The notes under the pieces are model-generated. The model had not been told where the DNA came from and searched no databases. It saw nothing but the letters and a program-made list of their open reading frames with translations. This document shows positions 42,472 through 64,000 of a stretch of DNA of 64,000 nucleotides, in pieces. A program made the position numbers and the translations under genes. Every line of letters starts with the position of its first letter. Within the stretch, counting starts at the first letter, position 1. This DNA comes from Macrostomum lignano (taxonomy: Eukaryota): contig NIVC01001034.1 of the NCBI GenBank assembly GCA_002269645.1, forward strand, positions 34,060-98,059. Reading direction: 5' to 3'.

Positions 42472-42524
<53 letters not shown>

Positions 42525-43420: not shown

Positions 43421-43769
43421 TGGGAGACAAAGGAGAAGAGTAAGGTGCAGAATAGAATTGCCAGACAGCCAAAAGCAGGCAGAAATCCAATCCGCCTTCC
43501 CATTAACACGAAATAGTTCAAACAAAGAGACAGGCGGCCCAGAAAGCAATATTTGCACTGACCATATAGCTATAGTTAAACCCAGTCAGCCACTAAATAT
43601 CGAATTTCATTAATTCATATCGAAAAACATTTCAACTCCCCACGCTCTGGAGTGTTCTGGACCATTCGGTGAAAGTGAAAATTTGATTATATGAATTAAA
43701 AATTCAACAGGTCTATGTGACTAGCCACAGAGAGAGAACTGGAATGATTTCATGTACGAGCCTATCGTA

Positions 43770-44150
43770 GGGGCCGTAAACCCGTAGCCCAGTGGTCCAG
43801 TGCGGCGTTCTGATGTGCCAGCGGCCCGGGCTCGATTCCAAATGCAGTCACATTGATTTGGGATGCATTCGAATCTCGGCTTGGCTCTCTGCTCCTGCAG
43901 TTAACGGCCTTGAGAGCCAACCCCCAAGGCACAGTGAAGTGTACATGTACATGAACGATAAATAAAGTTAGGGCCGCTGTACACCTGCGTGTGTGTGTGC
44001 CCGTGCGTATGACTGCGTACGTATCTGCGCGCTTGTGTGCCTGCTCAGGGGAGTCGGCGGAATTAGGCAGCAATGCCTCTCGCCGGTTGTGTGACAATGA
44101 CGCCTAAAGTGCGCCAGAGTGCACACGGCCCCTCCTGTCTTTTATTTATG
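43770..44150 (+). mobile_element. tRNA-headed SINE copy, near full length
   Basis: A-box TAGCCCAGTGG, B-box GGCTCGATTCC (43829-43839), core AGGGCCGCTGTACACC and an AT-rich end. The head matches the copy at 7.7 kb. Confidence 0.78.
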
Positions 44151-44659
44151 TATGCTCGTTGATTGCTAGTTTCAATTCTAAAATTTCCATTCGTTTTTCT
44201 ACTTACAATAACCATTGCGTTTCTTTCTACGAGCAGAGACAGCTGAGACAATAGGCAATAATTAGCGATCTTAATTAACTTACCTTTTTCACTGCAGAAT
44301 GAATTGCTTGGGTAAGGCAGCCCCTAGACAGCGCTCTGCTGTGTGGAAAGTTTGCCACAATGTTGATAACAAAACAAGGCAGAAGCTGCAGGGCAGGGAC
44401 AACTGAAGCGCAGCCGGGGATTCGGGAAGCCGCACTGGCTTTAAGCTTCCCCTACCGTTTGGCGATGTCTAGAATTGGCCCTGACAACCAATGAACGAAT
44501 TCTCCCATATGGGGAAGAGAGAGGCAGGAAGTTGAATTGGATGGACCGAGTCGGACCGAGGCAAGGACATCTCCAGTTAGAATCTGGAGTTTTCATGGAG
44601 TCGGAGCAGCTCAGTTGTAAACGGTTTTGACTCTCCTAAAACTCCTGCCGATTAGAAAG

Positions 44660-44850
44660 TGAAAGGGCCGCTGTACAAGCTGTAAATGAGTGCGTGCCTG
44701 TGTGCAGTTTTGCTTTCAGCGCGCCTACATGCATGTGCTCGGGAGTCAGAGGAATTGGCAGAATTGCCTCACCGCTACTTGAAGTAGTTGTGGGACGATG
44801 TCGCCAAAGGCGTTGCTAAAACTTTCCTGCAAATATTTATTTATTAAGGA
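44660..44850 (+). mobile_element. 5'-truncated copy of the same SINE family
   Basis: AGGGCCGCTGTACA core plus GGGAGTCAGAGGAATTGGCAGAATTGCC tail, ending TTTATTTATT. Confidence 0.6.
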
Positions 44851-45754
44851 ACTTTAAATGCACACCCACGAGCTTGGCTGTTAATGGCTGGGCACATATG
44901 CTTAGTAAAACAGCTTTCTACTTTCAGTTCAGTAGCAAAGAAGAATACATAAGCTATTTTATAAAAATATAATCAGCTGAAGTGACTTTGATAAGTTTAG
45001 AAGCCCAAAGGTTGCAGGCGTAAACAACTTGCTAATTGGTTGAGCAATAATTTACATTATCCAGTCCACTGAAATGTACATGGCAGCTTGAGACTGGAAT
45101 TCCGAGAAAGCCAATAAAAATTGGGGCGGGCGGTGGGGGGGGGGTAGAGTGGAAAGGCGCGGTTGGAGGGTTTAAGCTTGGGGGAGGGGTAAGAGCCTAC
45201 GAGTAATACACGAGCCTCGGCTTTAAAGTACATTAAAATGCTTCTTCTGTTTATCTTCTGAACTACGAGTAAAAGTAGCTTACACGCAAATGTGCTGAGT
45301 GGCTCATCTGAGTGGTTTCGTCTCAATTCTTGATTAAAAATTTATATTATCCTTTTTCTCTCAAGTTTATGTACAATTCGGATTTAAATTCAAATTCACA
45401 GATCTCCTTGCTCATTCACAGCCAAGCGCGAGAATGAAAATTCGTGACAAAGGGAAAAACCAGCGAGTCGTACCTCGATAAGGAGAGAAGCGAAAGAATG
45501 AGTGCTCCAGATATGGAAGCGAAGAGTTTACGGTCCTTTGAATATGATAAATGGGAGATTTTTCCACGCAGCGCGATTGCCCCAGCACTGACTGACGAGA
45601 CTGGTGGGATTGAAGTGTCTCACGGGAAAAGTTTTATGCGACCTCCCTGCAGAGCTCAGAACTGACTGAGGAGTAGCGGGCCTCGGTATTGGGGGATAAT
45701 ATTCCCATGTCAAGTCACTCTCTGTTAATCAATCAATGACAGCGGCTTCTTAGA

Positions 45755-46740
45755 TTCCTGGAATCCCAGATTCCCAATATTCCACAGATCGCCAGCTTTC
45801 CCATACTTCCCATAATCTCCAGATCTTTCATCCTCATGCTCTCAGGATTCCCCACATTCCTCATGCTCTCAGGATTCCCCACATTCCTCATGATCTCAGG
45901 ATTCCCCACATTCCTCATGATCTCAGGATTCCCCACATTCCTCATGATCTCAGGATTCCCCACATTCCTCATGATCTCAGGATTCCCCACATTCCTCTTG
46001 CTCTCAGGATTCCCCACATTCCTCATACTCTCAGGATTCCACATATTCCTCATACTCTCCAGATTTCCCATAGTCCAGATTCCCCAGATTCCCCATACTC
46101 CCAGATTCTCCAGATTCCGTATATTACCTAGATTTCCCAGATTCTCAAAAAATCCAAGATTCCCCAGATTCCCCAGATTCCCCATATTACTCAGATTCTC
46201 CAGATTCCCATATTACCCAGATTCCTCAGATTCCCCATATTACCCAGATTCCCCAGATTCTCAAAAATCCAAGATTCCCCAGATTCCCCATATTACCCAA
46301 ATTCCCCAGATTCCCAGATTCTCCATAATCCCACATTCCCCAGATTCCCCATATTGCTCAAATTCTCCAGATTCCCATATTACCCAGGTTCCTCCGATTC
46401 CCCATATCACCCAGATTCCCCAGATTCCCCATATTACTCAGATTCTCCAGATTCCCATATTACCCAGATTCCCCAGATTCCCCAGATTCCCCATATTACC
46501 CAGATTCCCCAGATTCCCCATATTACCCAGATTCCCCAGATTCTCAAAAATCCCAGATTTCACAGATTCCCCATATTACTCAGATTCCCCAGATTCCTTA
46601 TATTACCCAGATTCCTTAGGTTCCCCAGATTCCCCAGATTCCCCAGATTCCCCAGATTCCCAATACTCCCATAATCCCAGATTCTTCAGATTCCCCAGAT
46701 TCTCCAGATTCCCCAGATTCCCCAGATTCCCCAGGTTCCC
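45755..46740. repeat. Composite satellite built on ATTCCCCAG, including a 30-bp higher-order unit
   Basis: Directly visible. Confidence 0.92.
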
Positions 46741-46923
46741 GAGAAACAAAGAAACTGATTTTTTCATTCAAATAAAAACTTATTTTGCTCCAACAGAACT
46801 TCTGCAATCGCAATCAATGCTTTCTCTGCGCATTCCCTCTATCCTAGCCTAAAGCAAAAATCTTTGAGGAGGAAAAGAATATCTAGTTAACACTTGCAGA
46901 CGGGAAGCTTAGTGCCATTGAAA

Positions 46924-46962
<39 letters not shown>

Positions 46963-47221
46963 GAAAGCCGTGAGCAGAATTTCATATCGATCAATGACTA
47001 TTCCCATTGCCAGCCCAACCATCAAGGAAGGCATTTTGATATACATGTACTTCGTATTTGAAGTCCCTTAAGGATTGTCTAATCTTCCTATGTGAAGCTT
47101 CTGCGCTTTTTTCGGTTCAGCTTATAGCTAACCATTAGGATTACAGCTTCGATTTTGGCCTTTCCGTCGATGATATTGACAACTCGCAACTGGTGGCTTT
47201 GGGTTTGATTGCTTCTGGGAA

Positions 47222-47848
<627 letters not shown>

Positions 47849-48169
47849 GCCGCAGACATGGCGAGCAAGTTCTGTCATCTGTGAAATTGGCACATTAGTG
47901 AGAATGGAGATTGGGTCGCAACTACGGCAGGCGGAAATGAGGTCTCGCAATGGCGCCGGCTGAACTAAGTTGATTTTAGGAGCAGAGTAGAAGACACCTA
48001 AGCAATACGAAGAGGCTATTAGGCAATTTTCCAGCAGCCGAAGATGGCAATGATTGGATAGAGAAATCCACAAGTCGCTGCACTGGTTGCTCCACGCACT
48101 TGTTGGACTGCCTTACCAACGTAGCTCCATGTGCGATAACTACAGACACATGGAGCTACGGTTTTGCCG

Positions 48170-48395
48170 GTTGGCGCCACAGGTTTGCATTTTTGCGCCA
48201 CAGGTTTGCATTTTGGCGCCACAGGTTTGCATTTTGGCGCCACAGGTTTGCATTTTGGCGCCACAGGTTTGCATTTTGGCGCCACAGGTTTGCATTTTGG
48301 CGCCACAGGTTTGCATTTTGGCGCCACAGGTTTGCATTTTGGCGCCACAGGTTTGCATTTTGGCGCCACAGGTTTGCAGTTTGGTGCCACAAGTA
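48170..48395. repeat. 21-bp minisatellite GGCGCCACAGGTTTGCATTTT, ~10 copies
   Basis: Directly visible. Confidence 0.95.
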
Positions 48396-48889
48396 GGCCC
48401 ATTTTTGGCTCCACAGATGCATATTTTGGCACCACAGATGCCAGTTTTGGCACCAAAATATTTTTCGCTAATTGCAATTTCGGATTGTTTGCTTTACTTA
48501 CCCTTTTGGTGACAATATTTACTGTAGGCAAATGCATCAATTTTTATTAAAGTACAGCAAGTTTCACAAAAAGTGAAAAAAACATTTCCTATAGAAACTG
48601 AGCCAAGCAAACAGTTCCGGCAGGTAGATTGAAAATTCCCATTTCTCTTCTTACATTTTCATCCCTGTCTTTTTTGAGGTTCTGCTGATTGCAAACAGGG
48701 GAGCAATTGCTTTTTAAGCGCAGCTTCTTTGGTGGGCAAGGGAAGATATGACGTGGGTTGTGTACTCGTAGCATGCGAAATATGAATAGAAAATGGCGTA
48801 ATGGAATAGGAAAGCAAGTAGACAGACAGGTACGCCACATTTTAATGCGAATGAGTGAGAAAGTGAGTGGAGTAGAGATGAGAGACGGA

Positions 48890-49230
48890 GAGAGTATGAG
48901 AGAGGAAGGGATTAGTAGAGAGGTATTAGTAGAGATGTGTACTAGAGAAGAGATTAGTAGAGAGAGATTAGTAGAGAGGGGTAGTAGAGAGAGATTAGTA
49001 GAGAGGGGTAGTAGAGAGAGATTAGTAGAGAGGGGTAGTAGAGAGAGATTAGTAGAGAGGGGTAGTAGAGAGGGATAGTAGAGAGGGGTAGTAGAGAGGG
49101 GTAGTAGAGAGGGGTAGTAGAGAGAGATTAGTAGAGGGGTAGTAGAGAGGGGTAGTAGAGAGGGGTAGTAGAGAGGGCAGTAGAAAGGGGCAGTAGAGAA
49201 AGGAAGTAGAGAGGGTAGTAGCGAGAGTTC
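48890..49230. repeat. Purine-rich GTAGAGAGGG / GTAGAGAGAGATTA satellite
   Basis: Directly visible. Confidence 0.9.
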
Positions 49231-49684
49231 AGAGGGGAGAATAGAGTGGAGAAAGGTACGAGAGAGGCGAGCTGCAGGAAGATATATATGGAGTCGCGAA
49301 GAATGACAACGAGAAGTTCTCATCCAAGAATCGAATTCAAGCTGAAGAAATGAGCTCCCAGAATAATGGCTGACAATCTTCGGTGACTCGCTGATGAAGC
49401 ACCTTACGCCTGCACTCCTGGTTGCGAGAATTCCAAACAAATTTTGACGAATCTCAACCGATAAAAATCCCCACTGCACTACTACTCTAACTATTGTGAG
49501 TAGCAAGTAGGGAGAGAGATGGCTTAGCGTTTCACATTGTCTGTACTCACCTGTCTTCTGAGCTCAGGTTCATCGAATGGCTTTGAGTAGTCATTGTGCC
49601 AGAATGAGTCGTTGTCACCTGTTCTGTTAAATTATGATAGGGCATAATTATTTATTTTGTACTACTACAGGTGAGGGTAAATGA

Positions 49685-50090
49685 GGGAGAGAGATAAGAG
49701 GGATGATTAAGACTTACCTGTAGATATGAGAGTGATAAGGGGGATGATTAAGGCTTACCTGTAGATCTGAGAGAGATAATAGGGATGATTAAGGCTACCC
49801 GTAGTTATGAGAAATAGGGGAGATGATTAAGGCTAACCTGTAGATGCGAGAGAGATAATAGGGATGATTAAGGCTTACCTGTAGATGCGAGAGAGATAAG
49901 GGGGATGATTAGTGCTTACCTGTAGATGTGAGAGAGATAAGAGGGATGATTAATGCTTACCTGTAGATGTGAGAGAGATAAGAGGGATGATTAAGGCTTA
50001 CCTGTAGATGTGAGAGAGATAAGAGAGATGATTAGGGCTACCTGTAGATGCGAGAGAGATAAGGATGATAAAGGCTGCCTGTGGAAATAG
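49685..50090 (-). repeat. 41-bp minisatellite, ~10 copies; unit on - reads GTAAGCCTTAATCATCCCTCTTATCTCTCTCACATCTACAG
   Basis: Directly visible; see findings. Confidence 0.92.
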
Positions 50091-50589
50091 GGGAGATTTG
50101 ATAGGATTCGAGGAGTTCAGTTAGCAAAAAATAATGAAAAACTCACTCCGTCACAAACACCAATTTGTTAGGATCGCTTACTGCACTTTTAATTTCCTTT
50201 CGGGGATAGAACTTTAACTTTGGAGATAGAAATAATAAGAACCTAATCGAAACGAAGTGCTTTTTATAGTGGAGTCTCAGTACTTCTGGCTGACAGATTG
50301 CTCTTGTAAAAGGGCTTCTATTGGATTATACGAAGCTCCATCCACCTCATAGCAGCTGTATAGCAGATGAGCTTCTTATTTTGTGTCTGATCTGAGTCCA
50401 AGCGAAATTCGCTAAGTACCAATTTTTACTTAGAGAAAATTGAAGAATCAGTTTTTCCGCACGCACACAGTTTTTGGTGCAATATTTCAGAATTTTGTAT
50501 GGGTGTGCTTGAGCGTATTTTACAGATTTTAAAATCCTTTTACTTGCATTAAGCACGCGAAAACAGCAAGTATTGCGAAAATGGAAGCC

Positions 50590-51055
50590 CTTCCTCACCC
50601 TCCTCTTCTATCCTCCTCCATTGCCATCCCTCACCCTCCTTCCTCCCTTTCTCTCCCTCACCCTCCTCCCCCTTGCCATCCCTCACCCTCCTCCCCTTGC
50701 CCTCTCTCACCCTCCTCCCCTTGCCCTCTCTCACCCTCCCCCTTGCCCTCCCTCACTCTCCTCCCTTGCCCTACTACCTCACTCTTTTCCCATTGCCCTC
50801 TCCCTCACTCTCCTCCCCTTGCCCTCCCTCACCCTCCTCCCCTTGCCCTCTCTCACCCTCCCCCTTGCCCTCCCTCACTCTCCTCCCTTGCCCTACTACC
50901 TCACTCTTTTCCCATTGCCCTCTCCCTCACCCTCCTCCCCTTGCCCTCCCTCACCCTCCTCCCCTTGCCCTCCCTCTCCCTCACCCTCCTCCCCTTGCCC
51001 TCCCTCACCCTCCTCCCCTTGCCCTCCCTCACCCTCCTCCCCTTGCCCTCCCAAT
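50590..51055. repeat. Pyrimidine-rich ~24-bp satellite (CCCTCACCCTCCTCCCCTTGCCCT)
   Basis: Directly visible; G-rich on -. Confidence 0.92.
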
Positions 51056-51709
51056 CCCTAACAGTTTTTCTGTGCAAGTCTCTCAGCACTTTTGAGCGCA
51101 CCCGCGGGCGCTCGTACTTATTTGCCTGGAAATTTGACAATTATGATGGTATTATGCAGTAGCGTGACGCGCATTAATTAGAAGGCTCTATTTAGCTTGC
51201 TTAATGATAGGATAAGATTGTAAATCTGTGTATCGGAAATATTCTTTGATGTCGCCAGATGGAAAAGGCGGTGCTTTGCATAATCATTATAGCTAGCATC
51301 GCTTGGATGAGACTAATTACGGAGTAAATTCGCCTTTAGAATTGATTAGATAGGAGGACATGTCGACAGGTTTTGGGACACCTGATTAATTAGCAAAGTT
51401 GATAGATAATCAACTCTGGTGACAGTGGCTGCTGCAGCAGTGAATGGCAATTCTCAACTATTAGCTTCACTGACAAAAGCAATGCTTTCCATACTTTTAC
51501 AGACGCATTCAGATTCACAGTATTCAAAATTCGAATAATTGCTATGGATGATGGATGAAATAAATGATAGAGTAAAACATTTAAAATGCCAAGTCAATTA
51601 TTTTAAAAGGTTTTTTCGCTTTCTAATAAAGCTGATTTTCTGTCAGGGTTAATTAAAATTCTATATTTTTTGCTTTTTATCTACAACTGCCACTGCCAGA
51701 CGGTTGTAG

Positions 51710-52430
51710 GAAGGACTGCAGGATAGTGTAGGATAGACTGCAGGATAGACTATAGGATGGTGTAGGATAGACTGCAGGATAGACTGTAGGATAGACTGCA
51801 GGATAGACTGCAGGATAGACTGTAGGATAGTTTAGGATAGAATGCAGGATAGACTGTAGGATAGTGTAGGATATACTGCAGGATAGACTGTAGGATAGTG
51901 TAGGATAGACTGCAGGATAGACTGTAGGATAGTGTAGGATAGACTGCAGGATAGACTGTAGGATAGTGTAGGATAGAATGCAGGATAGACTGTAGGATAG
52001 TGTAGGATAGACTGCAGGATAGACTGCAGGATAGACTGCAGGATAGACTGCAGGATAGACTGTAGGATAGTGTAGGATAGAATGCAGGATAGACTGTAGG
52101 ATAGTGTAGGATATACTGCAGGATAGACTGTAGGATAGTGTAGGATAGACTGCAGGATAGACTGTAGGATAGTGTAGGATAGACTGCAGGATAGACTGCA
52201 GGATAGACTGTAGGATAGTGTAGGATAGACTGCAGGATAGACTGTAGGATAGTGTAGGATAGACTGTAGGATAGACTGTAGGATAGACTGAAGGATAGTG
52301 TAGGATAGACTGTAGGATAGACTGTAGGATAGACTGAAGGATAGTGTAGGATAGACTGAAGGATAGTGTAGGATAGTGTAGGATAGACTGTAGGATAGAC
52401 TGTAGGATAGACTGAAGGATAGTGTAGTAT
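51710..52430. repeat. AGGATAGACTGT/C and AGGATAGTGT satellite
   Basis: Directly visible; an inverted copy lies at 53200-53470. Confidence 0.95.
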
Positions 52431-53029
52431 AGACCATATCGACTGTTGCAAATAGTATATGGTAACGAAGAATATTGAGTTGGTTTATCTCTGCACTCTT
52501 TCTGCAGAAACTAAACTTATAAAAAACCACAATGGTTAACACAGTACAGTAGCTATTATTTAAAAGTGCTTTCCGTATAACTTCAGCTTCCAGAAGTTCG
52601 AGCTGCTAATTTTTTTTCTATCACGCAGTACAAGTGGAGTCTTTCCAACCATTTAAGTACAATTCTTCAATGCGTTTAGCACAGAGAATCGTCATCGCCA
52701 GCCAGCTAATTGGTCGGCCGCTCCTCTCCCGCTGTGACACACGAATTATAATTAACACTTAATTAAACCGCAATTATCTGTAGGGCAATTCAAAAACACC
52801 AGATTAAATTATTCACGCCCAGAGTAAAGAATACATTTTTATGTACCGATAATAATCTTGTCCAATATTTGCCTAGCTAAGGGGCAATTTGCCAACTTAG
52901 TAAACAGTTTAGTTTATTAGTGTTAAATTGTATTTGGTGAGAATGTTGTGCCTGTATAAATAGGCGAGTCGCATTAAATGGGGCTTGAGAAGTTCTAATG
53001 TTTCTATTACCTTAGCTATAGTTGTAAAA

Positions 53030-54853
53030 ATGAACCACGATGAAATTCGAGAACTGCAGATGGAAGCGAACCCATTCTTGGACGCTTTCATTGCTATTGA
53101 TGCCCATGAGAATGAGGTCATCGGCACTGCGGAGCTGCGGCAGCGACTCAAGCTGAGCACTTTTGTCAGTGACTCATTTGCTAAGGTAATTATTGTATTA
53201 TCCTACAGTCTATCCTGTAGACTATCCTGTAGTCTATCGTGTAGTCTATCCTGTAATCTATCCTGCAGTCTATCCTACACTATCCTACAGTCTATCCTAC
53301 ACTATACTACACTATCCTACAGTCTATCCTGCAGTCTATCCTACAGTCTATCCTGCAGTCTATCCTACAGTCTATCCTGTAGTCTATCCTGTAGTCTATT
53401 CTATAGTCTTTCCTTTAGTATATCCTGCAGTCTATCTTTCAGTTTATCCTACAATCTTACAATCTATCGAATAGAAAATCGTACTACAGTCTATTATGAT
53501 ACACAGTAGGATAGAATTGAATGCTCTAAAGACTGCAATCGTTTCTTTGAAATTTTTTTAGAGATGGCTGACAATTTTTGACTTAAACAGGAATGGCGCC
53601 ATCACTCTTGAAGAGTTCTGCCAAGTGCTCGGGCTCAAGGTTAACACTGCGTGAGTGATGTGGCACCTTAGCTCCAATCTGGCACCTCCAATCTGGCACC
53701 TAAGCTCCAATCTGGCACCTCCAATCTGGCACTTTAGCTCCAATCTGGCACCTCCAATCTGGCACCTTAGCTCCAATCTGGCACCTCCAATCTGGCACCT
53801 TAGCTCCAATCTGGCACCTCCAATCTGGCACCTTAGCTCCAATCTGGCACCTCCAATCTGGCACCTTAGCTCCAATCTGGCACCTCCAATCTGGCACCTT
53901 AGCTCCAATCTGGCACCTCCAATCTGGCACCTTAGCTCCAATCTGGCACCTCCAATCTGGCACCTTAGCTCCAATCTGGCATCTCCAATCTGGCACCTTA
54001 GCTCCAATCTGGCACCTCCAATCTGGCACCTTAGCTCCAATCTGGCACCTAAGCTCCAATCTGGCACCTCCAATCTGGCACCTTAGCTCCAATCTGGCAC
54101 CTCCAATCTGGCACCTTAGCTCCAATCTGGCACCTTAGCTCCAATCTGGCACCTTAGCTCCAATCTGGCACCTTAGCTCCAATCTGGCACCTTAGCTCCA
54201 ATCTGGCACCTTAGCTCCAATCTGGCACCTTAGCTCCAATCTGGCACCTTAGCTCCAATCTGGCACCTTAGCTCCAATCTGGCACCTTAGCTCCAATCTG
54301 GCACCTTAGCTCCAATCTGGCACCTTAGCTCCAATCTGGCACCTTAGCTCCAATCTGGCACCTTAGCTCCAATCTGGCACCTTAGCTCCAATCTGGCACC
54401 TTAGCACGCATTCGCATGTACACTAAATCTTAAAAAAACTTTTTAAATCCGTGATTCCGCAGCCGAGCTTACAGGCGTCAGCGTCAGCTGGGCTCCTCTT
54501 CCAGCCAATCAAAACTCCGACACCGGCAACGAAATGGAAGCGCGGCGAAAACCGAGCCGGCTGAATCGATTGCATCCTTGATCAGCTGCAGTGCTGCTCC
54601 GGACACCGAGTCAGTTATTATTAAAACTATAACTGAATTAGTGACATCTCGGGATTCTCTGCTCGAATCAGACACCGACTCTGAACTGGCTGATGAAGCC
54701 AAGCGGCAGCTGGAAAATTGTCTCGGTCGAATTTGGCACGTTGTCATCGTCAGAGGCGGATACTCGGCGAGTTACAGTCACGTGACCGGCTGCTCAGCGC
54801 GCTTTCGATGCGGCGATAGAATATTTCTCGTTTGGAAGACTCCGTCTGGGTGA
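53030..54853 (+). CDS. TAL: Tegument-allergen-like (TAL) protein: two EF-hands plus dynein-light-chain-like domain, ~211 aa
   Basis: Exons 53030-53185, 53562-53650, 54463-54853 (636 nt). [72 protein letters not shown] and FLVWKTPS parallel the Schistosoma Sm22.6/TAL motifs as recalled. Confidence 0.9.
53200..53470. repeat. TATCCTACAGTC satellite in TAL intron 1 (reverse complement of the 51.7-52.4 kb array)
   Basis: Directly visible. Confidence 0.9.
53660..54405. repeat. CTCCAATCTGGCAC(CTTAG) minisatellite in TAL intron 2
   Basis: Alternating 14- and 19-bp units switch to pure 19-bp units after ~54120. Confidence 0.95.
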
Positions 54854-54869
54854 CACGATGCTTGCTGAG

Positions 54870-55110
54870 CTGCTGCCAGCCAACGTAGATGGGGGGGGCG
54901 GATGACAGCCAAAGGATGGGGGCGGATGACAGCCAAAGTAGATGGGGGCGGATGACAGCCAAAGTAGATGGGGCGGATGACAGCCAAAGTAGATGGGGGC
55001 GGATGACAGCCAAAGTAGATGGGGGCGGATGACAGCCAACGTAGATGCATGGGGGGGGGGGGCGGATGACAGCCAACGTAGATGGGGGCGGATGACAGCC
55101 AAACTAGATG
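54870..55110. repeat. ~26-bp minisatellite GGGGGCGGATGACAGCCAAAGTAGAT just after the TAL stop codon
   Basis: Directly visible. Confidence 0.9.
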
Positions 55111-56784
55111 GGGGCGGAGCAACGACCTCACGACCTTAGCACCATGTCATAATGATGAAGTCGAGGGTAGCGCAGCAGCAGTTTCCCATTACAATCTGTC
55201 AGAGGTCATCTGTCTGCTCCAGCAATGTCGAGGGTCTTTTGAAGCATTTTAAAAAAACAGAATATTTGAAACGCGAACAACAGTGAAAAGTGAAAATTCT
55301 TTAAACTCAGCAAAACAGAATTTTATTCAAGGCGAACTCTGATATTCCCCTCCTGAAAAAGGAAATTTTTTTCGCTTTTGACCAATTTGACCTTACTTAT
55401 GCATTCCGTTTTGCATCAATGTTTAATTGTTGAGTTCATTTACAACATTACTTGTATCGCGCTTCTTTGATCGTTAGTTTTAATAATTCTTTTCGTACTA
55501 CTTACAATAGACGGGTAAGTAGTTTGAAAACAAATGCATCAATTTTTTTTTATGTTTCGTAAAGCTGAGTTTGAAGCGCTGGCGAATATTAAAATAATTA
55601 CAGGAGAGCTGCATGGGGAACCCTGGCCCAAAACCTCAGCGCCGAGGCAATTCTTTATGCCTCATAATGTTTTACAATGTGTACAATGTTTGATTACAGG
55701 AGGACAAGTGAGAGGGAGAGTCTGCCAAACTAGCCAGGTTTGAGTCCGTGCTCGGACAGATTAATTTAAACAAAAATTCGATCGTTTGAACAAGGCAAAT
55801 GCAATTAGCTCGTACTTGTAATAAAGCTTACTCTCAGCTGCGTACAAACATGACATATATAGAATGCGTCAGCATGGCCTTATTTGTCATTTAGCTAGTA
55901 TTTTATAATCTTAATTTATTAATTAATAAAGGTTTAGTCTGCTTGGATAAATATGAGAAATGTTATCTCGTACTTTTTGGTGCGTCATTATTGACCTTGC
56001 CGTCTTCGCCGAGCAACCTCGTTGAATTGAAGCGGCATGACTCAAGTTTGCATTCAGCATATAGCTGGGTGGGTGTCTTCAGTTTTAAGTGCCAGCGATG
56101 GCTCCTCTATAACTGTACTTTATTGTGCTTCAATTTCTTGGAAACTGTTTTCATAGCGTGGGGGGCAGGGTCCGAGCTATTTTATGAGAGTTTTTTTTTA
56201 CAAAATGGAATTTCGTGTTGAAGAAGAATCGCTTAGACTAAAAATGCTTTTAAAAACTCTTCGGGGCATTACTGGCACTGCGAAGAAGTGTGTGTGCGAG
56301 AGAGAGAAGTTGGGTAGCTGCGAGCAGCGCAGATACCCTGCGGGAGTGCCGTCTCGAGCTTGCACGCTGTCACACACAGGCGACACTCGAGGGTTTCTTG
56401 GGGAGATTCGGGACACCCCATCTGGTATTGTATTTGCGCTTGCTCCGTACTTGCGCATTTTCGGGGTTGATCATCACTTGCAGACAATGTGCCAGCAGCT
56501 GAGAGAGAGAAAGAGGGTTAGAATGAATTATTTATCTATAGGCCAGCACAAGTTTTAATGGCAGCTAAGTCTCGGCTGGGTCACGTGATTCAGTCTGAGG
56601 AGGGCCATTGGTCAACTGTTTTCAAGTTCTTTCTCTCTGACAGTCTCAGTAGATCGCATCTCGTAAAGTTCAGTTAAAGGTGACTCATGCTCTGTGAGAC
56701 GGCCTAAGGCAGCTGCGACACCGAGACAGACAATAACCGAAATCGTAGCCCAATATCGTAGGCGCGCCTCATCATTTCGGTGCT

Positions 56785-56792
56785 TATAAAAA
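56785..56792 (+). promoter_or_regulatory. Candidate TATA box of the myosin gene
   Basis: TATAAAAA about 70 nt before the ATG at 56863. Confidence 0.35.
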
Positions 56793-56862
56793 CCCAGTGT
56801 TGGTCTGCTTTGCTTGCTGCGAGCATGAGGCATAGCAACTAGATTATCGAAACATCAAAATC

Positions 56863-59800
56863 ATGCAACCTTCGGCTGACATCTACGACTTGGCCTCCCT
56901 CACTGAACTCTCCGAGGAGGCGATCGGCAAAGTGCTGCAGGACAGGTACAACGGAGATCGAATCTACACCCTGGTCGGAGACATTCTTGTGTTCTTGAAC
57001 CCCTTCAAACCTGTCAATGTCTACACCGAGAAGGAGTTTTCGTGTCTGTCAAGGCCAGACTGGAGCGGACCAGTTGCCGTTGGCAACGAAGTCGGATCCA
57101 GTGCTCACATTTACACTGTGGGCACCGCAGCCTTCAACTTGGTTGGCAAGGACTCGACTATACTGATCAGCGGCGAGTCGGGCTCGGGCAAGACTGAGAG
57201 CACCAAGCTGTTGTTGCAGCAGTTCGTCAAGATGGCCAGCTCGTCGCAACTGAATCGAACTCGAGTTGCCGAGTGTCTTCTAGCGGTGAGTATTAGCTTC
57301 TTGCATTCGAGCTTTTAACACTGATTTCACATTACGCATTCCTGTACGGTTTCAACATTAAGTGCTACGTTCATAAAATGTAAACTTTGCTTACTTAAAT
57401 TTCCAAATATTGTTAATTGGCTGCGTGTCAATGTAACAATAAAGTGCGACGTTTTTTATGCACAAATAGGCCCTGCTTGTTCCTTATTTCATTAAATATA
57501 GCTTTTTGCGTTCTAGTTTGGACTGCGGGCTTTTAATTTGGACACAGAGTTGAGAAAAGCCCAGAGAATGCTGGCTAGTCTATGGCACAAACCAGAAGCA
57601 ACTGACGGCCTTTCAAATTCGACAGAGGGCACAAATTTGGACACAGAAGACAAGAAGATCAAAGTTAAGAACGACAGTAATCAGTTTTTGAGGGTAGGTT
57701 ATGAATCTGTATATTTGACCCAAACATTGAACTTATCCAAACCGTTAGATACAATTTTCTAAAACTTTAAACTTTAAGACCCTTGCGTTGTCAGAGCCTG
57801 TTTCTTCCTAAAAAACTCGTCGTGTACTTAGTGCGCTGGCTCAAGAAAAAACATGCAAGAGAAAGGGGAAGGAAAAGACTGTCCAAATTTGTGCCCGCTG
57901 TCGAATTTAGAAGCCCGTCAGTTGCTTCTGGTTTGTGCCATAGACTAGCCAGCATTCTCTGGGCTTTGCTCGACTCTGTGTCCAAATTAAAAGCCCGCAG
58001 TCCAAACTAGAACGCAAAAAGCTATCATGAGCTGTGTAAAAATGTGTGCTGTTTCTTTTGATGGCTGCTCTGCAGCCACAGTGGGTTTTCTCAGAGTGAG
58101 TGGCAGGGTGCCGCTGGTGCTGCCCAAAGAAGATCATTTCTTCCCCACTTGGCTGGGCTGTGTCTGTCTATGGTTCAATGCTTTTTCATTTCTTTGGCCG
58201 GGCCTATCATTTCTTTGGCCCGGTCCAAGTTTGGAAGAAATATATTTTTTCCGTTTCTTTCTGTCTATGGCCCAAAGTCCCCGAACTCAAGTTCGTCAGT
58301 AGTCTGTGCAGTGAATTCATCATTCTTAGTTCAATTGAGTAGCTTTTTAATTAATTCTTTTATTTTAATTGAGTTTTATTCAATTCTCAAAAAAAGCGTC
58401 TAAGCTACTGAACTCAAAATTTAAGCAACCCATGTCGTTTTTTTCGCACAAGTGACGAAAAACAGCGGTCGCGCTTTCCCTATTGCCGCAATACAAAGTG
58501 GCCTATCTAGGGAATATTAGATCTACGGTGCTGTCCACAGACTGCAGAGCAGCCAGCGGGTTTGAGGGTGGTAAACTTTAAAGTTATCTCATAGGGCCAT
58601 CCTTACCACCATGGCTACGCCCCGATTGACCTGATCACCAACCGGTTCATGAACTCCTAAGGGACAGATGAATGACTTTGCTTAACTTTTGTCTGTGATG
58701 CCTTGGGGGCTTTAGCTGTTGCCGAACATGCCTGTACATTAGTTCATAAGCAAACTCGTTTCTCCCCAAACTCACCAAATCAGGCCAATCCGATCATGGA
58801 AGCTTTCGGCAACGCTCGCACAGTGATGAACCACAACTCCAGCCGATTCGCCAAGTTCGTCTCGCTAGGCCTCCAGGGCAACGCTTTGGTGTCCAGCGAA
58901 ATTCGCACCTACATGCTGGAGAAGTCTCGACTACTAAGCGCCACCGAAGACGAAGGCAATTTTCACATTTTCTATTACATGTGCCTTTCTAGTAACAGCT
59001 TCTTCAAGGATGTCAGGCCGCTAGGACCGTTGAGTTTGATCAGCAATGCTGAGACGCTTGGCAGGCGATACACAGATTTAGAGGCCAAAGCCACGGAGGT
59101 CTTGGACGCATTCGACAAGCTCAGCTTCACTGCTCAGCAGAAGGAGGGCGTGTTCCAGATCCTCTCAGGCCTGCTGCTCCTGGCCGATGTCGAGTTCCGA
59201 TCCGAGGAGCAGAACCACACGGTGTGCCCCTCGCTTGATCCCAAATCGGAGACGACTTTTAAGCTGGCCTGCAAACTGCTCGGCCTCAAGGGCAAGGATT
59301 CGAGGCGTCGTCTGCTCAAGACTCTGACTACAAGTAAGCTGAAGGTCAACGACGAAGACATCTACTCCCTGTTTCACGAAGAAAAGACGCGGGTGGTGCT
59401 AAACGGCTGCATACGGGCGATTTACACGAAACTGTTTGACTGGATTATCCAGCGAGTGAACGACATCCTGGCCAGCACCGGCCGCACGGACCCCGGCACC
59501 AGAGTTCGACAAATCGGCGTGCTGGACATCTTCGGCTTTGAATCGTTGGCCATAAACTCGTTTGAGCAGCTGTGCATCAACCTGGCGAACGAACAGCTCC
59601 AGTTGTTCTTCACCCACCACGTGATTCAGCTGGAACAGGCCGAGTACCAGTCCGAAGGTCTGTCCTGGGTTGAGATTCCATTCGAAGACAACCAGGTGAC
59701 TCTGAACCTATTTCTAGAGAGGCCGCTTGGAGTTCTGTCTCTGTTGAACGAGGAGAGCAGCCTAGCCTCCGGAACGGACGAGAGTCTGTATAACAAGCTG

Positions 59801-61072
59801 ATGAAGCATTTGGTGGACAAGCCGAAGTTGCAAATCTCGGCTAAGAATCCTGCCGTGTTCACCGTGAATCATTACGCCGGAGCTGTCACCTACACCATAC
59901 CCGGTATGGTTGAGAAGAACCGAGACAAGGCTCCGGAGAATACGATGGAGGTTCTGGCCTCCTCTAAGTTGAAGCTGTTGACCGAAATGATCAACAGCCA
60001 CCACGGCAGCAAGGCGAAGGCTGGCAACGGAAAACAGCAAGCATCAGCTGGCCTGCAGCTGGCTGTTCAATTCCGCAGCTCGTTGGACTTTTTGCTGGCC
60101 AAGCTGCGCGAATCGCAGCCATTTTTCGTGCGCTGCATCAAGCCCAATAGGGATAACGCTGCGAACAGTTTCGACCAGGAGTACGTTCGGCGACAGATTC
60201 ACTACTGCGGGATAGCCGAAGCGGTGCGAGTCCGTCAGGCCGGCTTTCCGGTGAGGTGCACCTACGGGGAGCTGCACCTGTTGTGTCCGGTGCTGAGCTT
60301 CCTGTACGGCTCTGGCCGGCTGGAAAGCGACGCAGCCCGCATTCGAGCCGTGTGCCGACAGGCCGAGCTGCCAGCAGAGGAGGTTGCCATGGGCAAGACG
60401 AAAGTGTTCATGGGCGTGAACGCCAGCCGCTTACTTGCCAAGGAGGAGCGGCGCTACTGCGGACGCGTGGTAACCTGCCAGAAGGTGATTCGTGGCTGGC
60501 TGCAGAGGCGCCGCTATCTCAAGTTGAAGGCTGCCGAGATCGAAAGGCGTAAACGAGCCGCGCTGGCGTTGCCGATCACTCCTACGGCGCCGCCACCTCC
60601 GGAGGAGTTGAGAAAGTCGACAGTCAGCGTTGGCGAAGAAGGCGAAGAAGGAGCACAAGTGACTCGATCGGAGACAGTGCTCTGGTTCAAGACTACGCAG
60701 AAGGACCAGATCATGCAGACTCGCGGCTATGAGACCTGGTTTCACGGCATCATAACGCGCAACGAGGCCAACCAGCTGCTCGGATCCAAAAACACCGGGA
60801 GCTTTCTAGTCCGAGTCAGCAACAGCCAGCTTGGCTTTGTGCTCAGCTTCAAGTCGAGAAACGGAGTCCGGCACTACCTGATTGAGCAGCTCGAGCGCGG
60901 CAGATTCAACGTGCTTGGCGAGAAGCAGGTTCACTCAAGCCTGGGCAAAATTATCGATTTTCACAAGGCTAACGGCTTTCGTAACTGCGATGTTCGGCTG
61001 ACAACACCGGTGGGACAGCCAGATAAGGAGCCAGATTATGAGGAGCTGTTGTGCAATGCTCCGGCGCTATGA
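56863..61072 (+). CDS. Myo28: Unconventional myosin with one IQ motif and a C-terminal SH2 domain (class XXVIII-like), ~903 aa
   Basis: Exons 56863-57285 and 58784-61072. P-loop GESGSGKT, NPIMEAFGNA, switch I NSSRF, switch II DIFGFE, FEQLCINLANEQLQ, FVRCIKPN and GKTKVF. IQ motif CQKVIRGWLQRRRY. SH2 WFHGIITRNEA..LL....GSFLVRVS..HYLI. Confidence 0.93.
57500..58023. mobile_element. Second copy (inverted) of the long-TIR MITE, in the myosin intron
   Basis: Same TIRs and interior as 33301-33827 in opposite orientation; AT on both flanks. Confidence 0.92.
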
Positions 61073-64000
61073 TATGAGCTTTGACGTTATTGAGTCTCAG
61101 TGATAAGACACTCGTACCCTAACGTATATTCGTGTCGAAGATCTACGGATTATAAAGATTTAAAAATATTTTGTCCTTACAGTCACATCTGTTCAGACTG
61201 AATAAGGCTGCATAAAATGTAAACTTTTACATCTTTATAATGTAAAAGTACACTACTGTTGATAAAAATCGCATTATCCTGTTGTCGGTAATTCTTCATC
61301 AAACTAAATTAGCTCTTACATGTAACTCACAATTATAACGTTACCAACTCAATGGTGGGAGTGTTTAAAATTAATTGGTGAAAAACTTTTATTAGCCAAG
61401 TAAAATCTATCGACACTATAAAAGTAGAACTTCCGTACGTGATTGTTACTGGCAAGCTCTGTCATTTTATTATTATAAATTTGCATTAAAAATTGTTCTC
61501 ATATTGTTTAACTTTTTTTAACTTTTTATCAATATATATATGAGCTAGGTCCAATGTGAACCACTGAAAAATCATCAGTTTTCCTGATGATGTCCACTTA
61601 CGATTTGCGTTGGTAAACGATTTTGAAAGAAGCAAGAACTGCATGTTTTTGACGTTCTGTTTTTAATACTCTACTTTTGTCGAGCAACGTAGTACACTCC
61701 GCAAGCCTACTTTAAGTAGTACTAAGGACCACTATAAGTAACGGTGTTTCAACGTCAACATTTAGTGATCCAAAATGTATTTGCATACGGAGCAAAAAGG
61801 TCTAAAGTTTTGCAAAAAAACGTTTGACATACTTTGCAGTCGTACATGAAGTATATATATAAAGTCTGTATTTGACTAATGCAATGACTAAATTTTCTAC
61901 GCTATAAATTATTCTATCCCGTTTCTACTTAATAAAAGCAAGCTATATATTACCAGTGCTCCGCTAGCACTATGAATCGTAAAATTTTATATTAAGAGCA
62001 ACGCCATACAAGTCCAAATTATGCATACGATATGTAAAATGATGTTTTAGCCCACGACGCAGGTAAGCGACATTTTATAAATAAGATATAAAATTATATT
62101 CTGACTTTTAAAACTGTGCTTAGTAAGTAATTAAAATTAGTAGCGTAAAAAGTAGAAGCTAAAATGTTTTTGTTTACATGTTTTGTTTCACTGCGTTGAA
62201 TGTAAGAGTTTTTTTTAAATGCTCGTGCCAACAGCTTGTTAAGGTTATAAATATGAATATAAATTAATTATTTGGAAATTGAGATGTTACAAGCGATAGC
62301 GAAGAGCTTGTTAAATGTTAGGCCTATGCTCAGATACAATTCAAATCTTCCACCCGAAACCGGTGGTCATTTTTTCTCAATCTCACCCCATCACTGTGTC
62401 CGTGTTTGTGATAAAATTTGTTCACAAGGCAAGCCGGCCCTAGCTTAGGCCTAACTTAGCCAGTTAGGCCCTAGCCTTAGGTTAGGGCAGGGGCTAGGGC
62501 TAGGGCTAGGCTAGCCGCTAGCTCTAGCCTGGTGAAGACCAAGGAACTGTGGAGAGTTTTTACTAGAGTTTGATTGAAGCCACCCACTTGTTTGGAGGTG
62601 GAAACTTGAAATTTTGCTTAGGCCCCTACTAATAGTTGTACTGAACACTGATGTTTCATCCCTATTCCCTATATGTCAATATGGTATAACATACATATAA
62701 CTATAACTAATGTATGTGTAATGTATAGTCTAAGTCTAAATAATGAATTACAGGTAAACCATGAAATTTGTCATTTACTACCCATATTCCTCCAAAATCA
62801 ATCTACCATGAGCTACCATATTAGGATATGATGGCCATAGGGCCTAATTAGGACATTTTTGTTCCCTTGCTTCCATCCCTGTTTGGCCACTTTTAATGCC
62901 CTTTAAGAAACTTTTTGGCCCTTTTTGCACTTGCTACTAGCATTTTTGAACTTTATTTTTTGACAAAAATATATATTTGAGTTCTCTTAGATCAATTCAG
63001 CTCTTGGATCAAAAGATGGAAAAAACTTATAAAGTCAGAACAAGAAGGCCAACAATGGATAGTGCTTTTTTCCCAAAACTCTGGGACCACTTTGTCTTAG
63101 CCAGCTTATATGTATTTTTATAAATGTCATATTCATTTATAAATGTCATAGGGTTAGTGTTAGGGATAATTATTGTTGTTTTCCAATGATGACTAAATGG
63201 CAAACAAACTAATATTTAAAAAATACACAAAATCAAACAGCATTCTTTCATTATAGAAGACCCAAAAATGCGTGACTTTCGTAATGGAAGACCCATGGAA
63301 AAGGGGAAGAAATCAATAAAAAAACGAGCATTCATCTCTGCCTAGCTTCAGGGTGCCGACGGAAGCCTTGAACCATTCGCACATGATGTCACGCGAGTAA
63401 TTGGACAGTGGCCTCACTCTCTAGTTGGTACATCGTCATCAGCGACCTACATAGGATAAATATGGATGAAAGATACTTGTACGAGTACGAAAGATTCAGA
63501 AACGCATGAAAGCAGCGTGCGTATGCACCCCCCCTCACCTTCAAAAAAGAAGACCCAACTCATTTCACCTAAATATTTACAACACGGAGGTCTTGCATTA
63601 CGAAAGTAAGAGACCTTTATGTTAAACTTACTTCTGCGGAACTTACTTCTGTGGTCTTACTCTAGAGTCTAGACCACAATAGATTGCTTTTCTTCCATAT
63701 CCCCTACTTTCGTTTCAAAAGACCTTTAATGGATGCTTAAAATTGTCAGTCTTTTAAAACGAAACTGTATATATCAGACGTTCATAGGAAATGTACCCAA
63801 AGGCTGACACAGGAAAACAAAATCATCTAAACCCTACGTTTCTGCAGCTTTTGTTGCTGCCACCCCTATTACCTTCGTTTTGGAAGACCTTCAATAAAAT
63901 AGTAGCTTGACGGTCTTCTAAAATGAAACTGTAATATAAACTGCAATAAAGGCACACAAAGTCATTAAGAAAAACAAACAAAATAATAGACAACAATATG

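Follow-up and report, generated by a model that had tools for sequence, protein, structure and literature searches.

The window analysed here is a stretch of 64,000 nucleotides of Macrostomum lignano DNA, and its + strand carries a myosin gene that runs from an ATG at 56863 to a stop codon ending at 61072. The two exons of this gene encode a spliced product of 903 aa with, in order, a myosin head, one IQ-type motif, a disordered Pro-rich linker, an SH2 domain and a DYEEL motif. Specifically, exon 1 (56863..57285), which is backed by tblastn, supplies the start codon and motor residues 1–141, and exon 2 (58784..61072, 2289 nt) supplies residues 142–903 and the TGA stop codon at 61070–61072. The sole intron (57286..58783; 1498 nt, GT..AG) falls in phase 0 between A141 and A142, in agreement with the single intron and 2.3-kb exon given in a preliminary description of this DNA. 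Exon 1 ends in ECLLA followed by GTGAGT, and splicing restores the canonical myosin motif ECLLA-ANPIMEAFGNART.

As judged from its coding sequence, the gene is intact and is evolving under purifying selection. Compared with a second M. lignano copy, on NIVC01000413.1, it shows 24 synonymous changes, 20 non-synonymous changes and zero indels (dN/dS 0.25), and the annotated M. lignano hypothetical protein BOX15_Mlig012024g2 is 98% identical to the product. No further copy of the gene was found within the window by tblastn. With respect to the 3′ end, a tblastn comparison of 14 orthologue tails with 61001–64000 revealed no extra exons, the DYEEL region alone being matched, and NCBI's independent gene model for the other copy stops at the same C-terminal end. 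The amphioxus class-28 myosin gene has an intron at the same position and phase (Q146/V147, phase 0), although its introns number ~30 as opposed to the single one of M. lignano. Related intron patterns are found in classes 3, 16, 28, 36 and 80 (PMC5583752 supplement, from whose species Macrostomum is absent), so the intron shared with amphioxus is not class-specific.

Motor domain, lever and linker

All features described below lie on the + strand. The motor domain (56887..60412, interrupted by the intron; residues 9–684) matches Pfam Myosin_head with an E value of 5e-160 and is the most divergent among 164 myosins compared. As read from the motif columns of the alignment, the P-loop GESGSGKT (residues 104–111, nt 57172–57195) and switch II LDIFGFE (residues 388–394, nt 59522–59542) are intact relative to the consensus forms GESGxGKT and DIxGFE. 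Switch I, NHNSSRFAKF (residues 157–166, nt 58829–58858), reads NHNSSRFAK where the consensus is NxNSSRFGK and so carries a replacement of Gly164 by Ala that is unique to this protein, Gly being invariant at this position in 119 orthologues and 163 other myosins (n = 282). This replacement could impair ATPase activity. The residues that contact nucleotide are all kept, namely K/T of the P-loop, S/S/R of switch I and D/G/E of switch II. By prediction, then, the motor is divergent yet catalytically complete in these residues, save for the switch I Ala.

A motor that is decaying or catalytically dead, in a protein whose sole role is to bind actin or pTyr as a scaffold, would account for the loss of an otherwise invariant Gly and for the number of changes at near-invariant sites, which is the highest in the set (8 of 85, against a set mean of 1.06). 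We regard this reading as extremely improbable, as the eight changes are all conservative and the AF2 model shows a motor that is well folded with confidence. A pseudogene or dead motor was rejected in view of the dN/dS value, the lack of indels and stop codons in the two copies and the intact catalytic residues.

Beyond the motor, a single long helix predicted by AF2 (residues 686–735) forms the lever and contains the IQ-type motif CQKVIRGWLQRRR (residues 706–718, nt 60476..60514). The core of this motif fits IQxxxRGxxxR, and the corresponding Pfam IQ match (703–719) scores 16.8 bits, under the cutoff of 20.3. The Pro-rich linker that follows (residues 737–765, nt 60569..60655), with PITPTAPPPP at 738–747, is disordered (AF2 pLDDT <50). 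The stretch from the IQ motif to the WF helix preceding the SH2 domain measures 58 aa, against an orthologue median of 125, and is the shortest among 120 sequences. Given an AF2 helix that stops at 735 and a linker of under half the normal length, the short coiled coil described for class 28 is probably missing from the M. lignano protein.

The SH2 module and its C-terminal tyrosine

The SH2 domain, including its last strand, spans residues 793–886 (nt 60737..61018), with FLVRVS at 815–820 and the last strand, LTTPVGQ, at 880–886. The Pfam SH2 match covers residues 793–868 (E 9e-16), and the last strand falls outside its boundary. All four residues of the pTyr pocket are present, specifically R800 (alphaA2 Arg), R818 (betaB5 Arg), S820 (betaB7 Ser) and H838 (betaD4 His). 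Across 119 orthologues neither R800 nor R818 varies, H838 is kept in 118, and position 820 is either Ser or Gly, which bears out the earlier view of this SH2 as intact. The domain is confidently folded in AF2 (pLDDT ~90), and binding of pTyr by the predicted SH2 can be expected with good confidence.

The domain is flanked by two class-specific tail motifs. One is a WFxxTQ helix 17 residues N-terminal of the SH2 (residues 769–784, nt 60665..60712; here WFKTTQ, with W775, F776, T779 and Q780 invariant), and the other is LTxPCGQ-x5/6-DYx(E/D)L following it. The latter ends in D892-Y893-E-E-L896 (nt 61034..61048), part of EPDYEELL at residues 890–897. The preliminary description had placed this Tyr about 25 residues past the SH2, a figure that holds when counted from the Pfam boundary; since the last SH2 strand extends past that boundary, the true spacer is 8–9 residues, and the D-Y-x-(E/D)-L motif is fixed at this distance across the class. 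The tail tyrosine, whose conservation had been singled out beforehand as decisive, is indeed conserved. Y893 is found in 107 of the 119 orthologues, D892 in 113 and L896 in 116, and the flanking columns are variable. The motif is conserved from corals to fish, with an identical EPDYEEL in the latter. In rotifers the Tyr is displaced by two residues, and because these animals keep an invariant pocket despite the shift, we infer that the SH2 must bind other ligands. The M. lignano protein ends soon after the motif, which lies ten residues from the C-terminus with 7 residues after L896, against an orthologue median of 111.

In terms of structure, AF2 assigns a pLDDT of 78 to residues 881–890 and of 64 to residues 891–900, and models E894–L896 with moderate confidence as a helical turn. 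The structure prediction proposed earlier as a check gave confident folds for the motor and the SH2, and it did not show the segment in the extended form of a bound ligand. The acidic E-x-D-Y-E-E-L context is typical of Src/Syk-type kinase substrates, and on balance Tyr893 is probably functionally phosphorylated.

The closest solved SH2 is that of HSH2D (ALX; 2cs0, E 2e-21), followed in the PDB search by the SH2 domains of SYK and ZAP-70, with the SH2 region of PLC-gamma1 among the weaker matches. Tarsier HSH2D aligns end-to-end with the M. lignano module at 40% identity over 130 aa (E 6e-31), and it likewise has a Pro-rich lead-in, WFxHTQ, SH2, LTxPCxQ and DYEEL at the same spacing. This canonical sequence (P0295) was the one usable return of a search with the HSH2D SH2 from the PDB alignment, which otherwise gave mostly alternative isoforms with frameshifted ends. 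Whereas HSH2D is a small adaptor without a motor or IQ, the M. lignano module is the tail of a 903-aa myosin. By sequence, the M. lignano protein is related through its module to the SH2D2 adaptor family (SH2D2A/TSAd, HSH2D and SH2D7, of which HSH2D alone was compared) and is not a member of it. Because the module occurs end to end in motor-less HSH2D, the tyrosine motif appears to be a property of the SH2 module and not a motor-specific clamp, which suggests a role for the Tyr in the mechanism of the module itself.

Against a class-28 module HMM from which the query was left out, the tail module scores 151 bits, compared with 138 for HSH2D and 89–127 for choanoflagellate SH2 myosins. Pairwise, the query module scores a median of 111 bits against class-28 modules. 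A database search with the 135-aa flatworm SH2 module alone gave zero matches, the word index being too sparse for so divergent a query.

Class assignment

The 119 best non-self database matches of the product all combine a motor with an SH2 (PF00063 and PF00017; E 1e-157 to 1e-139). As the preliminary description had claimed, the motor, IQ, Pro-rich linker and SH2 largely match the class XXVIII architecture defined by Odronitz & Kollmar 2007, in which the tail has an IQ, a short coiled coil and an SH2 and for which the criterion of membership is the phylogenetic grouping of the motor domain (PMC2375034). The likeness to class 28 takes in a motor without an N-terminal extension, the IQ-type motif, the linker, the C-terminal SH2, the WFxxTQ helix and PCGQ-x5/6-DYxEL (PMC2375034, PMC5583752). 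Compared with the class, the M. lignano protein is the shortest seen (903 aa versus ~1060), and the distal Pro-rich motifs are all gone. The class had earlier been called rare, a view that does not survive the present sampling of animals, in which it forms >119 clusters at 90% identity across many phyla. These comprise cnidarians, molluscs, an annelid, a brachiopod, rotifers, echinoderms, hemichordates, amphioxus, hagfish, sharks, fishes, amphibians, crocodilians and birds; mammals have no class-28 myosins, and neither do any of the arthropods covered by PMC13520260.

With respect to the motor alone, ML placement (BLOSUM62-derived rates with gamma) favours class 28 with an LWR of 0.88 and a RELL of 55%. 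Placement in the kinase-bearing class III clade is 17 lnL worse (RELL 0.5%), and placement outside the III/28/choanoflagellate supergroup is 21 lnL worse (RELL 9%), the sampled motors for the latter including a class IX representative and none identified as class XVI. In an NJ tree of 164 motors and 653 columns, the query is basal within this supergroup on a long branch (BS 72); its interpretation as a new class was set aside, the position being treated as long-branch behaviour. Clade HMMs score the query motor at 626 bits for the generic profile, 589 for the choanoflagellate-type group, 574 for class 28 and 535 for class III. True clade members gain ~70–180 bits with the HMM of their own class, and the query motor, best matched by the generic profile, lacks a class-28-specific signal. 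The motor phylogeny called for in the preliminary description has thus separated this protein from class III and pointed to class 28 by LWR, whereas the RELL value, the basal NJ position and the profile scores leave that placement weak. The class assignment rests mainly on the tail. Class III and class 28 motors do fall in one supergroup, and NCBI calls the orthologues 'myosin-IIIb-like'; unlike class III myosins, the M. lignano protein has no N-terminal kinase domain. Classes 3, 16, 28, 36 and 80 together have been termed the 'class-28 cluster' (PMC5583752 supplement).

The motor data would also suit a protein that is not a true class-28 orthologue, in which an HSH2D-like SH2 tail was added independently to some other or orphan motor lineage. 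Several holozoan myosins outside class 28 bear SH2 tails; choanoflagellate, filasterean and sponge 'myosin III-like' proteins also join a motor to a C-terminal SH2 (PMC3942036), and the SH2 myosin of Didymoeca costata has EYAELF after PFGQ. The class-28 profile score of 574 bits, against 589 and 626, the basal NJ position and the RELL of 55% point in the same direction. Nonetheless, we consider independent gain of the tail very unlikely. The choanoflagellate, filasterean and sponge SH2 modules score 50–81 bits against the query, below the class-28 median, the choanoflagellate ones also scoring lower than the query in the HMM comparison, and most are without DYxEL or its spacing, whereas the WFxxTQ and PxGQ-x5-DYEEL motifs of M. 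lignano and their spacing are identical to those of class 28. Moreover, the best ML placements lie within class 28, the intron position is common to the amphioxus gene, and changes at 8 of 85 near-invariant sites fit a long branch. Taken together, we hold the class-28 (Myo28) identity of the locus to be highly probable, and the M. lignano protein is a new, stripped-down member of this already known class.

Possible roles of Tyr893

The literature searched yielded no phosphorylation, binding, motility or other functional data for any class-28 myosin. The reading that we prefer is that of a Myo28 orthologue acting as a pTyr-recruited motor with Tyr893 as an SH2 ligand, in trans rather than in cis; as a whole, it falls a little short of an even chance. 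The SH2 would tether the single-headed motor to tyrosine-phosphorylated partners, giving a phosphotyrosine-recruited actin motor. Tyr893 would itself become phosphorylated and then be bound by a same-family SH2, a role that we advance tentatively. In its favour, YEEL fits the pY-hydrophilic-hydrophilic-hydrophobic class in which the SYK/ZAP-70 SH2 domains, the next-closest solved ones, are placed (PMC9783222 table); against it, HSH2D, with the closest SH2, is listed under pY-x-N specificity (PMC9783222), and YEEL departs from that pattern. Binding in trans would take the form of a reciprocal, STAT-like head-to-tail pairing through which a monomer becomes a two-headed motor. The build of the protein is monomer-like, with a lever helix that stops at 735 and the shortest IQ-to-SH2 linker among 120 sequences. 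In STATs, too, one conserved Tyr motif lies shortly after the SH2 of its own chain; the two differ in that there is no sequence kinship past the SH2 fold and that the STAT spacer between SH2 and Tyr is longer. We slightly favour trans over cis binding because of the short, fixed spacer and the absence of the longer helical region that orthologues have.

Binding in cis would amount to a Src-like clamp, in which phospho-Tyr893 folds into its own SH2 and thereby occludes it or locks an inactive form; dephosphorylation or a competing ligand would then turn on cargo binding by the motor. The intact pocket and a Tyr motif conserved at fixed spacing are consistent with such a clamp, and in PLC-gamma1 a pTyr shortly past an SH2 does bind in cis. 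In both the Src pY527-SH2 clamp and the PLC-gamma1 cSH2-pY783 pair, moreover, the Tyr lies on the SH2's own chain, as here. The Src likeness drawn in the preliminary description stands insofar as YEEL resembles pYEEI, but it is loose, since this Tyr sits ~9 residues from the SH2 and the module is also found in HSH2D, which has no motor to regulate. In Src, by comparison, the Tyr lies beyond the whole kinase domain. A spacer of merely 8–9 residues from the last SH2 strand speaks against the clamp, as the C-terminus of an SH2 points away from the groove that takes the ligand and the spacer of the known cis example is longer, and AF2 gives no extended-ligand placement of the segment. We therefore regard the cis clamp as distinctly unlikely.

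The motif could instead serve other proteins as a docking site, for instance a Src/Syk-type kinase SH2 or an adaptor, and not act as a self-ligand, which would make the myosin both a reader (through its SH2) and a written substrate (through YEEL) in a phosphotyrosine relay. Src-family SH2 domains have their optimum at pYEEI, ITAM-type motifs are YxxL, and SH2D2-family adaptors act by being phosphorylated and then bound by kinase SH2 domains, which counts in favour of docking. The acidic E-x-D-Y-E-(E/D)-L consensus resembles pYEEI (class IA entry, PMC9783222). With a listed preference for pY-x-N (PMC9783222), HSH2D would have better ligands than its own DYEEL, which likewise favours docking. 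Simple docking, however, needs no strictly fixed spacing to the SH2, and we rate it as rather unlikely.

Fixed spacing, together with conservation on par with the SH2 core, would be explained if DYxEL were not phosphorylated and simply extended the structure of the SH2 fold, its Tyr and Leu being packed against the domain and conserved for stability. The pLDDT values of the segment and its short helical turn at 894–896 are compatible with this view, and the joint conservation of DYxEL and the N-terminal WFxxTQ helix suggests an extended domain. Against it, pLDDT declines on approaching the motif, phosphorylation motifs typically have such an acidic context and YxxL pattern, and the rotifer Tyr is displaced with the SH2 unchanged. 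Such a purely structural role appears improbable to us.

Building from the preferred reading of Tyr893 as a ligand in trans, WFxxTQ-SH2-PCxQ-x5/6-DYEEL may be envisaged as an ancient self-recognising phospho-switch. Tyrosine phosphorylation would pair two single-headed Myo28 motors in trans, in head-to-tail fashion, to form an on-demand processive dimer at tyrosine-kinase signalling sites, and the vertebrate HSH2D/TSAd adaptors would be motor-less descendants of the Myo28 tail. This larger scheme is speculative, and we give it a low probability; if it is true, the flatworm protein, ending directly past the motif and lacking the usual linker, would offer the smallest natural construct for proving it. 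M. lignano, for which RNAi and transgenesis exist, carries a naturally minimal Myo28 whose linker is short and whose distal tail is missing. The homology of the tail module with the immune adaptor HSH2D connects an orphan class of motors with a signalling family that has been studied. If the Tyr–SH2 pair governs oligomerisation or cargo binding, tyrosine-kinase signalling would be coupled directly to an actin motor.

Gene model, genomic copies and neighborhood

The myosin gene lies on the forward strand in two exons. Exon 1 runs from the ATG at 56863 to 57285, where it ends after codon 141 at a GTGAGT donor (57285|57286), and exon 2, by ORF reading, extends from an AG acceptor (58783|58784) to the TGA at 61070-61072. 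The spliced exons (2712 nt) encode 903 residues, and the splice junction rebuilds canonical myosin sequence (..RVAECLLA|ANPIMEAFGNART). Every minus-strand ORF over the locus is shorter than 105 aa, and tblastn detected no other copy of the gene within the window. The preliminary description of a motor, an IQ motif, a Pro-rich linker, an SH2 domain and a tyrosine-containing tail motif proved accurate. Specifically, Pfam places Myosin_head at residues 9-684 (E 5e-160) and SH2 at residues 793-868 (E 9e-16), the latter model ending short of the last SH2 strand. The IQ motif (703-719) scores 16.8 bits against a cutoff of 20.3, and its core, CQKVIRGWLQRRR (706-718), is a good fit to IQxxxRGxxxR. PITPTAPPPP occupies residues 738-747, FLVRVS residues 815-820 and EPDYEELL residues 890-897.

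The top database match, BOX15_Mlig012024g2, is a Macrostomum lignano protein, also of 903 aa, that differs by 20 substitutions and no indels (98% identity). Because its locus on NIVC01000413.1 is collinear with the window (97.3% over 9.2 kb, intron included), the window copy would represent a second allele or homeologue. On a broader scale, window 50863-64000 is collinear with and ~97% identical to NIVC01000413.1:132294-148504 (86-93% in the upstream repeat region), a level that fits a second haplotype or a homeologue of a partly duplicated genome. The two coding sequences differ by 24 synonymous and 20 non-synonymous changes (dN/dS 0.25) and by no indels, versus 11 gap positions in the 1.5-kb intron. 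The gene is thus constrained, under purifying selection, and by its sequence appears expressed. A 438-aa public model from M. lignano (P0121; UniRef A0A1I8GQC5), which omits ~43 internal residues (~324-366) and ends prematurely, is a faulty prediction from this same locus.

With respect to the surroundings, a ~530-bp MITE-like element with ~146-bp terminal inverted repeats occurs within the myosin intron (57498-58025) and at 33299-33830; the two copies are 96.8% identical, and the intron of the NIVC01000413.1 copy contains the element as well. A ribophorin II gene lies ~4.5 kb downstream of the myosin on that contig and would fall just past the window end. About 16 kb upstream of the myosin, an uninterrupted 442-aa minus-strand ORF (39963-41291) encodes a full rhodopsin-family 7TM domain (PF00001, E 7e-51) and probably represents a GPCR gene without introns. 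Between the two, 42374-55118 holds a dense series of unrelated tandem arrays: a 15-mer repeated 68 times (AGACAGCGGAGAGGG, 42374-43405), which explains why GC and AT skew are extreme in that interval, a 9/27-mer (45846-46744), (AGAT)n (47222-47848), 12/34-mers (51705-52434; the unit recurs in reverse complement at 53199-53457) and a 19/33-mer (53661-54405). Long ORFs in this region gave no Pfam matches and were rejected as repeat artefacts.

Family membership

The next 119 matches (E 1e-157 to 1e-139, 31-38% identity) all combine PF00063 with PF00017. These proteins occur in corals, gastropods, bivalves, a brachiopod, an annelid and bdelloid rotifers; in crinoids, urchins, sea cucumbers, brittle stars, hemichordates and amphioxus; and in sharks, many non-acanthopterygian fishes, coelacanth, a salamander, an alligator and many birds. 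A hagfish member surfaced in the search for representatives. The architecture of IQ, short coiled coil and SH2 was defined as class XXVIII by Odronitz and Kollmar (PMC2375034), and the class has been traced back to Capsaspora by Kollmar and Muehlhausen (PMC5583752); it is missing from all arthropods examined in a 2026 survey (PMC13520260). The class named in the preliminary description thus has the right architecture, but its supposed rarity does not hold, as the class is widespread across animal phyla. No functional study of any member was found in the literature searched. The NCBI pipeline labels the orthologues "myosin-IIIb-like", and entries P0002-P0120 are auto-named "myosin-IIIb-like", "myosin-IIIa-like" or "non-specific serine/threonine protein kinase", even though none contains a kinase domain. 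This systematic misnomer hides the class in databases.

The motor was compared with 26 class 28 motors and 137 other myosin representatives from an exhaustive HMMER search. Several of the latter could be assigned by Pfam scans and source names: a class IX myosin (RA, C1, RhoGAP), one MH2-tailed myosin, choanoflagellate myosins with PH or WW tails, and SH2-tailed choanoflagellate and sponge myosins. A clade with motors beginning near residue 290-360 was, from that offset, taken to be the kinase-bearing class III; no class XVI member was identified among the 164 motors sampled. In a neighbor-joining tree (164 motors, 653 columns), the flatworm motor forms a very long basal branch of a class III/28/choanoflagellate supergroup, with 72% support for the supergroup including it. 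Clade HMMs score it at 574 bits (class 28), 589 (choanoflagellate-type group) and 535 (class III) against 626 for a generic profile, whereas left-out true members, rotifers included, gain ~70 to 180 bits from their own class. Maximum-likelihood placement on a fixed backbone (BLOSUM62-derived exchange rates, four gamma categories, alpha 0.7) put the motor on the rotifer class 28 stem, with likelihood weights of 0.88 for class 28, 0.07 for the WW-tailed choanoflagellate pair and 0.05 for the supergroup stem. RELL gave 55%, 17% and 16% for these, respectively. Class III identity is excluded (17 lnL worse, RELL 0.5%), and placements outside the supergroup, that of the class IX representative among them, are disfavored (21 lnL worse, RELL 9%). 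The class assignment of the motor is therefore favored by likelihood but tempered by the RELL value and the basal neighbor-joining position: the motor sequence is compatible with class 28, membership not being proven by the motor alone.

No other motor among the 164 diverges as much as this one: at 85 positions conserved to at least 95%, it shows 8 changes (mean of the others 1.06, maximum 6). In switch I, NHNSSRFAK, all three M. lignano sequences have Ala at residue 164 (window 58850-58852), which is the Gly of SSRFGK in all 119 orthologues and in 163 other myosins compared. The nucleotide-binding residues are otherwise complete; the seven further changes are P81A, Q98S, L185M, G275A, F422I, L613I and F638L. 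The sole intron falls between A141 and A142 in phase 0, and the amphioxus orthologue (~30 exons) has a phase 0 intron at the homologous Q146|V147. Since classes 3/16/28/36/80 have related intron patterns, this shared position supports common descent within that cluster and is not class-specific.

The class 28 assignment draws its support mainly from the tail. Against a class 28 module HMM built without it, the SH2 module (770-903) reaches 151 bits, compared with 138 for the adaptor HSH2D, 135 for one further relative, 127 for Salpingoeca rosetta and 125 for the hagfish member. Pairwise, it scores 93-124 bits to class 28 modules versus 50-81 to choanoflagellate and sponge SH2 myosins. W775, F776, T779 and Q780 are invariant, in a predicted helix exactly 17 residues ahead of the SH2.

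The tail tyrosine and its module

Although the tail past the SH2 is mostly unalignable across the 119 orthologues, D892 (113), Y893 (107) and L896 (116) are exceptions, and the consensus is E-x-D-Y-E-(E/D)-L, with an identical EPDYEEL in cyprinid fish. The twelve sequences lacking an aligned Tyr are eight rotifers (Tyr two residues upstream, SQYDHESL), two truncated isoforms and two birds. Conservation of this residue, set beforehand as a refutation test, is accordingly borne out. The distance of ~25 residues first given between the SH2 and the Tyr requires correction: as the Pfam model reaches only to 868 and leaves out the last strand, the spacer in structural terms amounts to ~9 residues, and 8 or 9 residues separate the Cys/Val of the LTxPCGQ strand from the Tyr in nearly all sequences. 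The SH2 has an intact pocket, with all phosphotyrosine-pocket residues present (R800 and R818 invariant; S820, Ser or Gly in orthologues; H838 in 118/119). Among SH2 myosins outside class 28, P0136 (Didymoeca costata; PFGQ-x14-EYAELF) and P0199 (a Logan assembly sequence; PCGQNVDDNGYEENDLEELY after the SH2) carry Tyr-x-E-L-type motifs at different spacing, a hint that the Tyr motif is older than animals.

The nearest solved SH2 is that of human HSH2D (2cs0, E 2e-21), followed by those of SYK and ZAP-70. A review table lists HSH2D under pY-x-N and SYK/ZAP-70 under pY-hydrophilic-hydrophilic-hydrophobic (PMC9783222); given these preferences, YEEL may or may not suit the cognate SH2. Canonical tarsier HSH2D reads ..PPPLPPRLDWFLHTQ..SH2..LTHPCRQKDPANADYEELF.. 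and aligns with the flatworm module at 40% identity over 130 residues (E 6e-31), spanning the WFxxTQ helix, SH2, LTxPxxQ strand and DYEEL at the same spacing. Because this motor-less adaptor has the whole module, the SH2-plus-DYEEL unit is both older than and independent of motor attachment, which argues against a Src-style clamp evolved to regulate a catalytic domain. Whatever its nature, the role of the Tyr would belong to the module.

A compact form and its possible regulation

Among the sequences compared, the flatworm protein is the minimal member of its class. Its motor (674 aa) is close to the orthologue median of 669, whereas only 58 aa separate the IQ from the WF helix (median 125, minimum 68) and 7 aa follow L896 (median 111). 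The protein lacks every distal Pro-rich motif present in other phyla, and no downstream exon for them was found. In orthologues the distal tails carry conserved, lineage-specific motifs, namely RPLPKxPEEAYxRLLxNQ (molluscs, annelid, brachiopod), FPRLYPSIRLAMREIQQ (vertebrates) and PPLPxRNY (several phyla), which look like SH3 ligands and further Tyr motifs. AlphaFold2 (63-sequence alignment, mean pLDDT 78.8) predicts a well-folded motor, a single continuous helix (686-735) comprising the converter exit, IQ and a short charged stretch, disorder at 737-765, a helix at 769-784 and an SH2 at ~90 pLDDT; values then fall to 78 (881-890) and 64 (891-900), E894-L896 forming a helical turn. The short coiled coil described for the class is probably absent, and the heavy chain by itself therefore looks monomeric.

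In terms of mechanism, the SH2 may recruit the motor to tyrosine-phosphorylated partners, and Tyr893 may be a kinase substrate that, once phosphorylated, would be read by an SH2. As to the reader, we would rank a self-family ligand in trans first, ahead of docking for other SH2 proteins, then a cis clamp and finally a purely structural extension. Phosphorylation-driven pairing in trans is attractive because the spacer is short and fixed and a dimerizing region is missing. The Src-like gating originally proposed for the tail Tyr is unproven and, on present sequence comparisons, somewhat weakened. The flatworm gene adds an unusually compact new member to a known class that has gone unstudied, and its main value is as a tractable minimal system for asking whether tyrosine phosphorylation controls a myosin.
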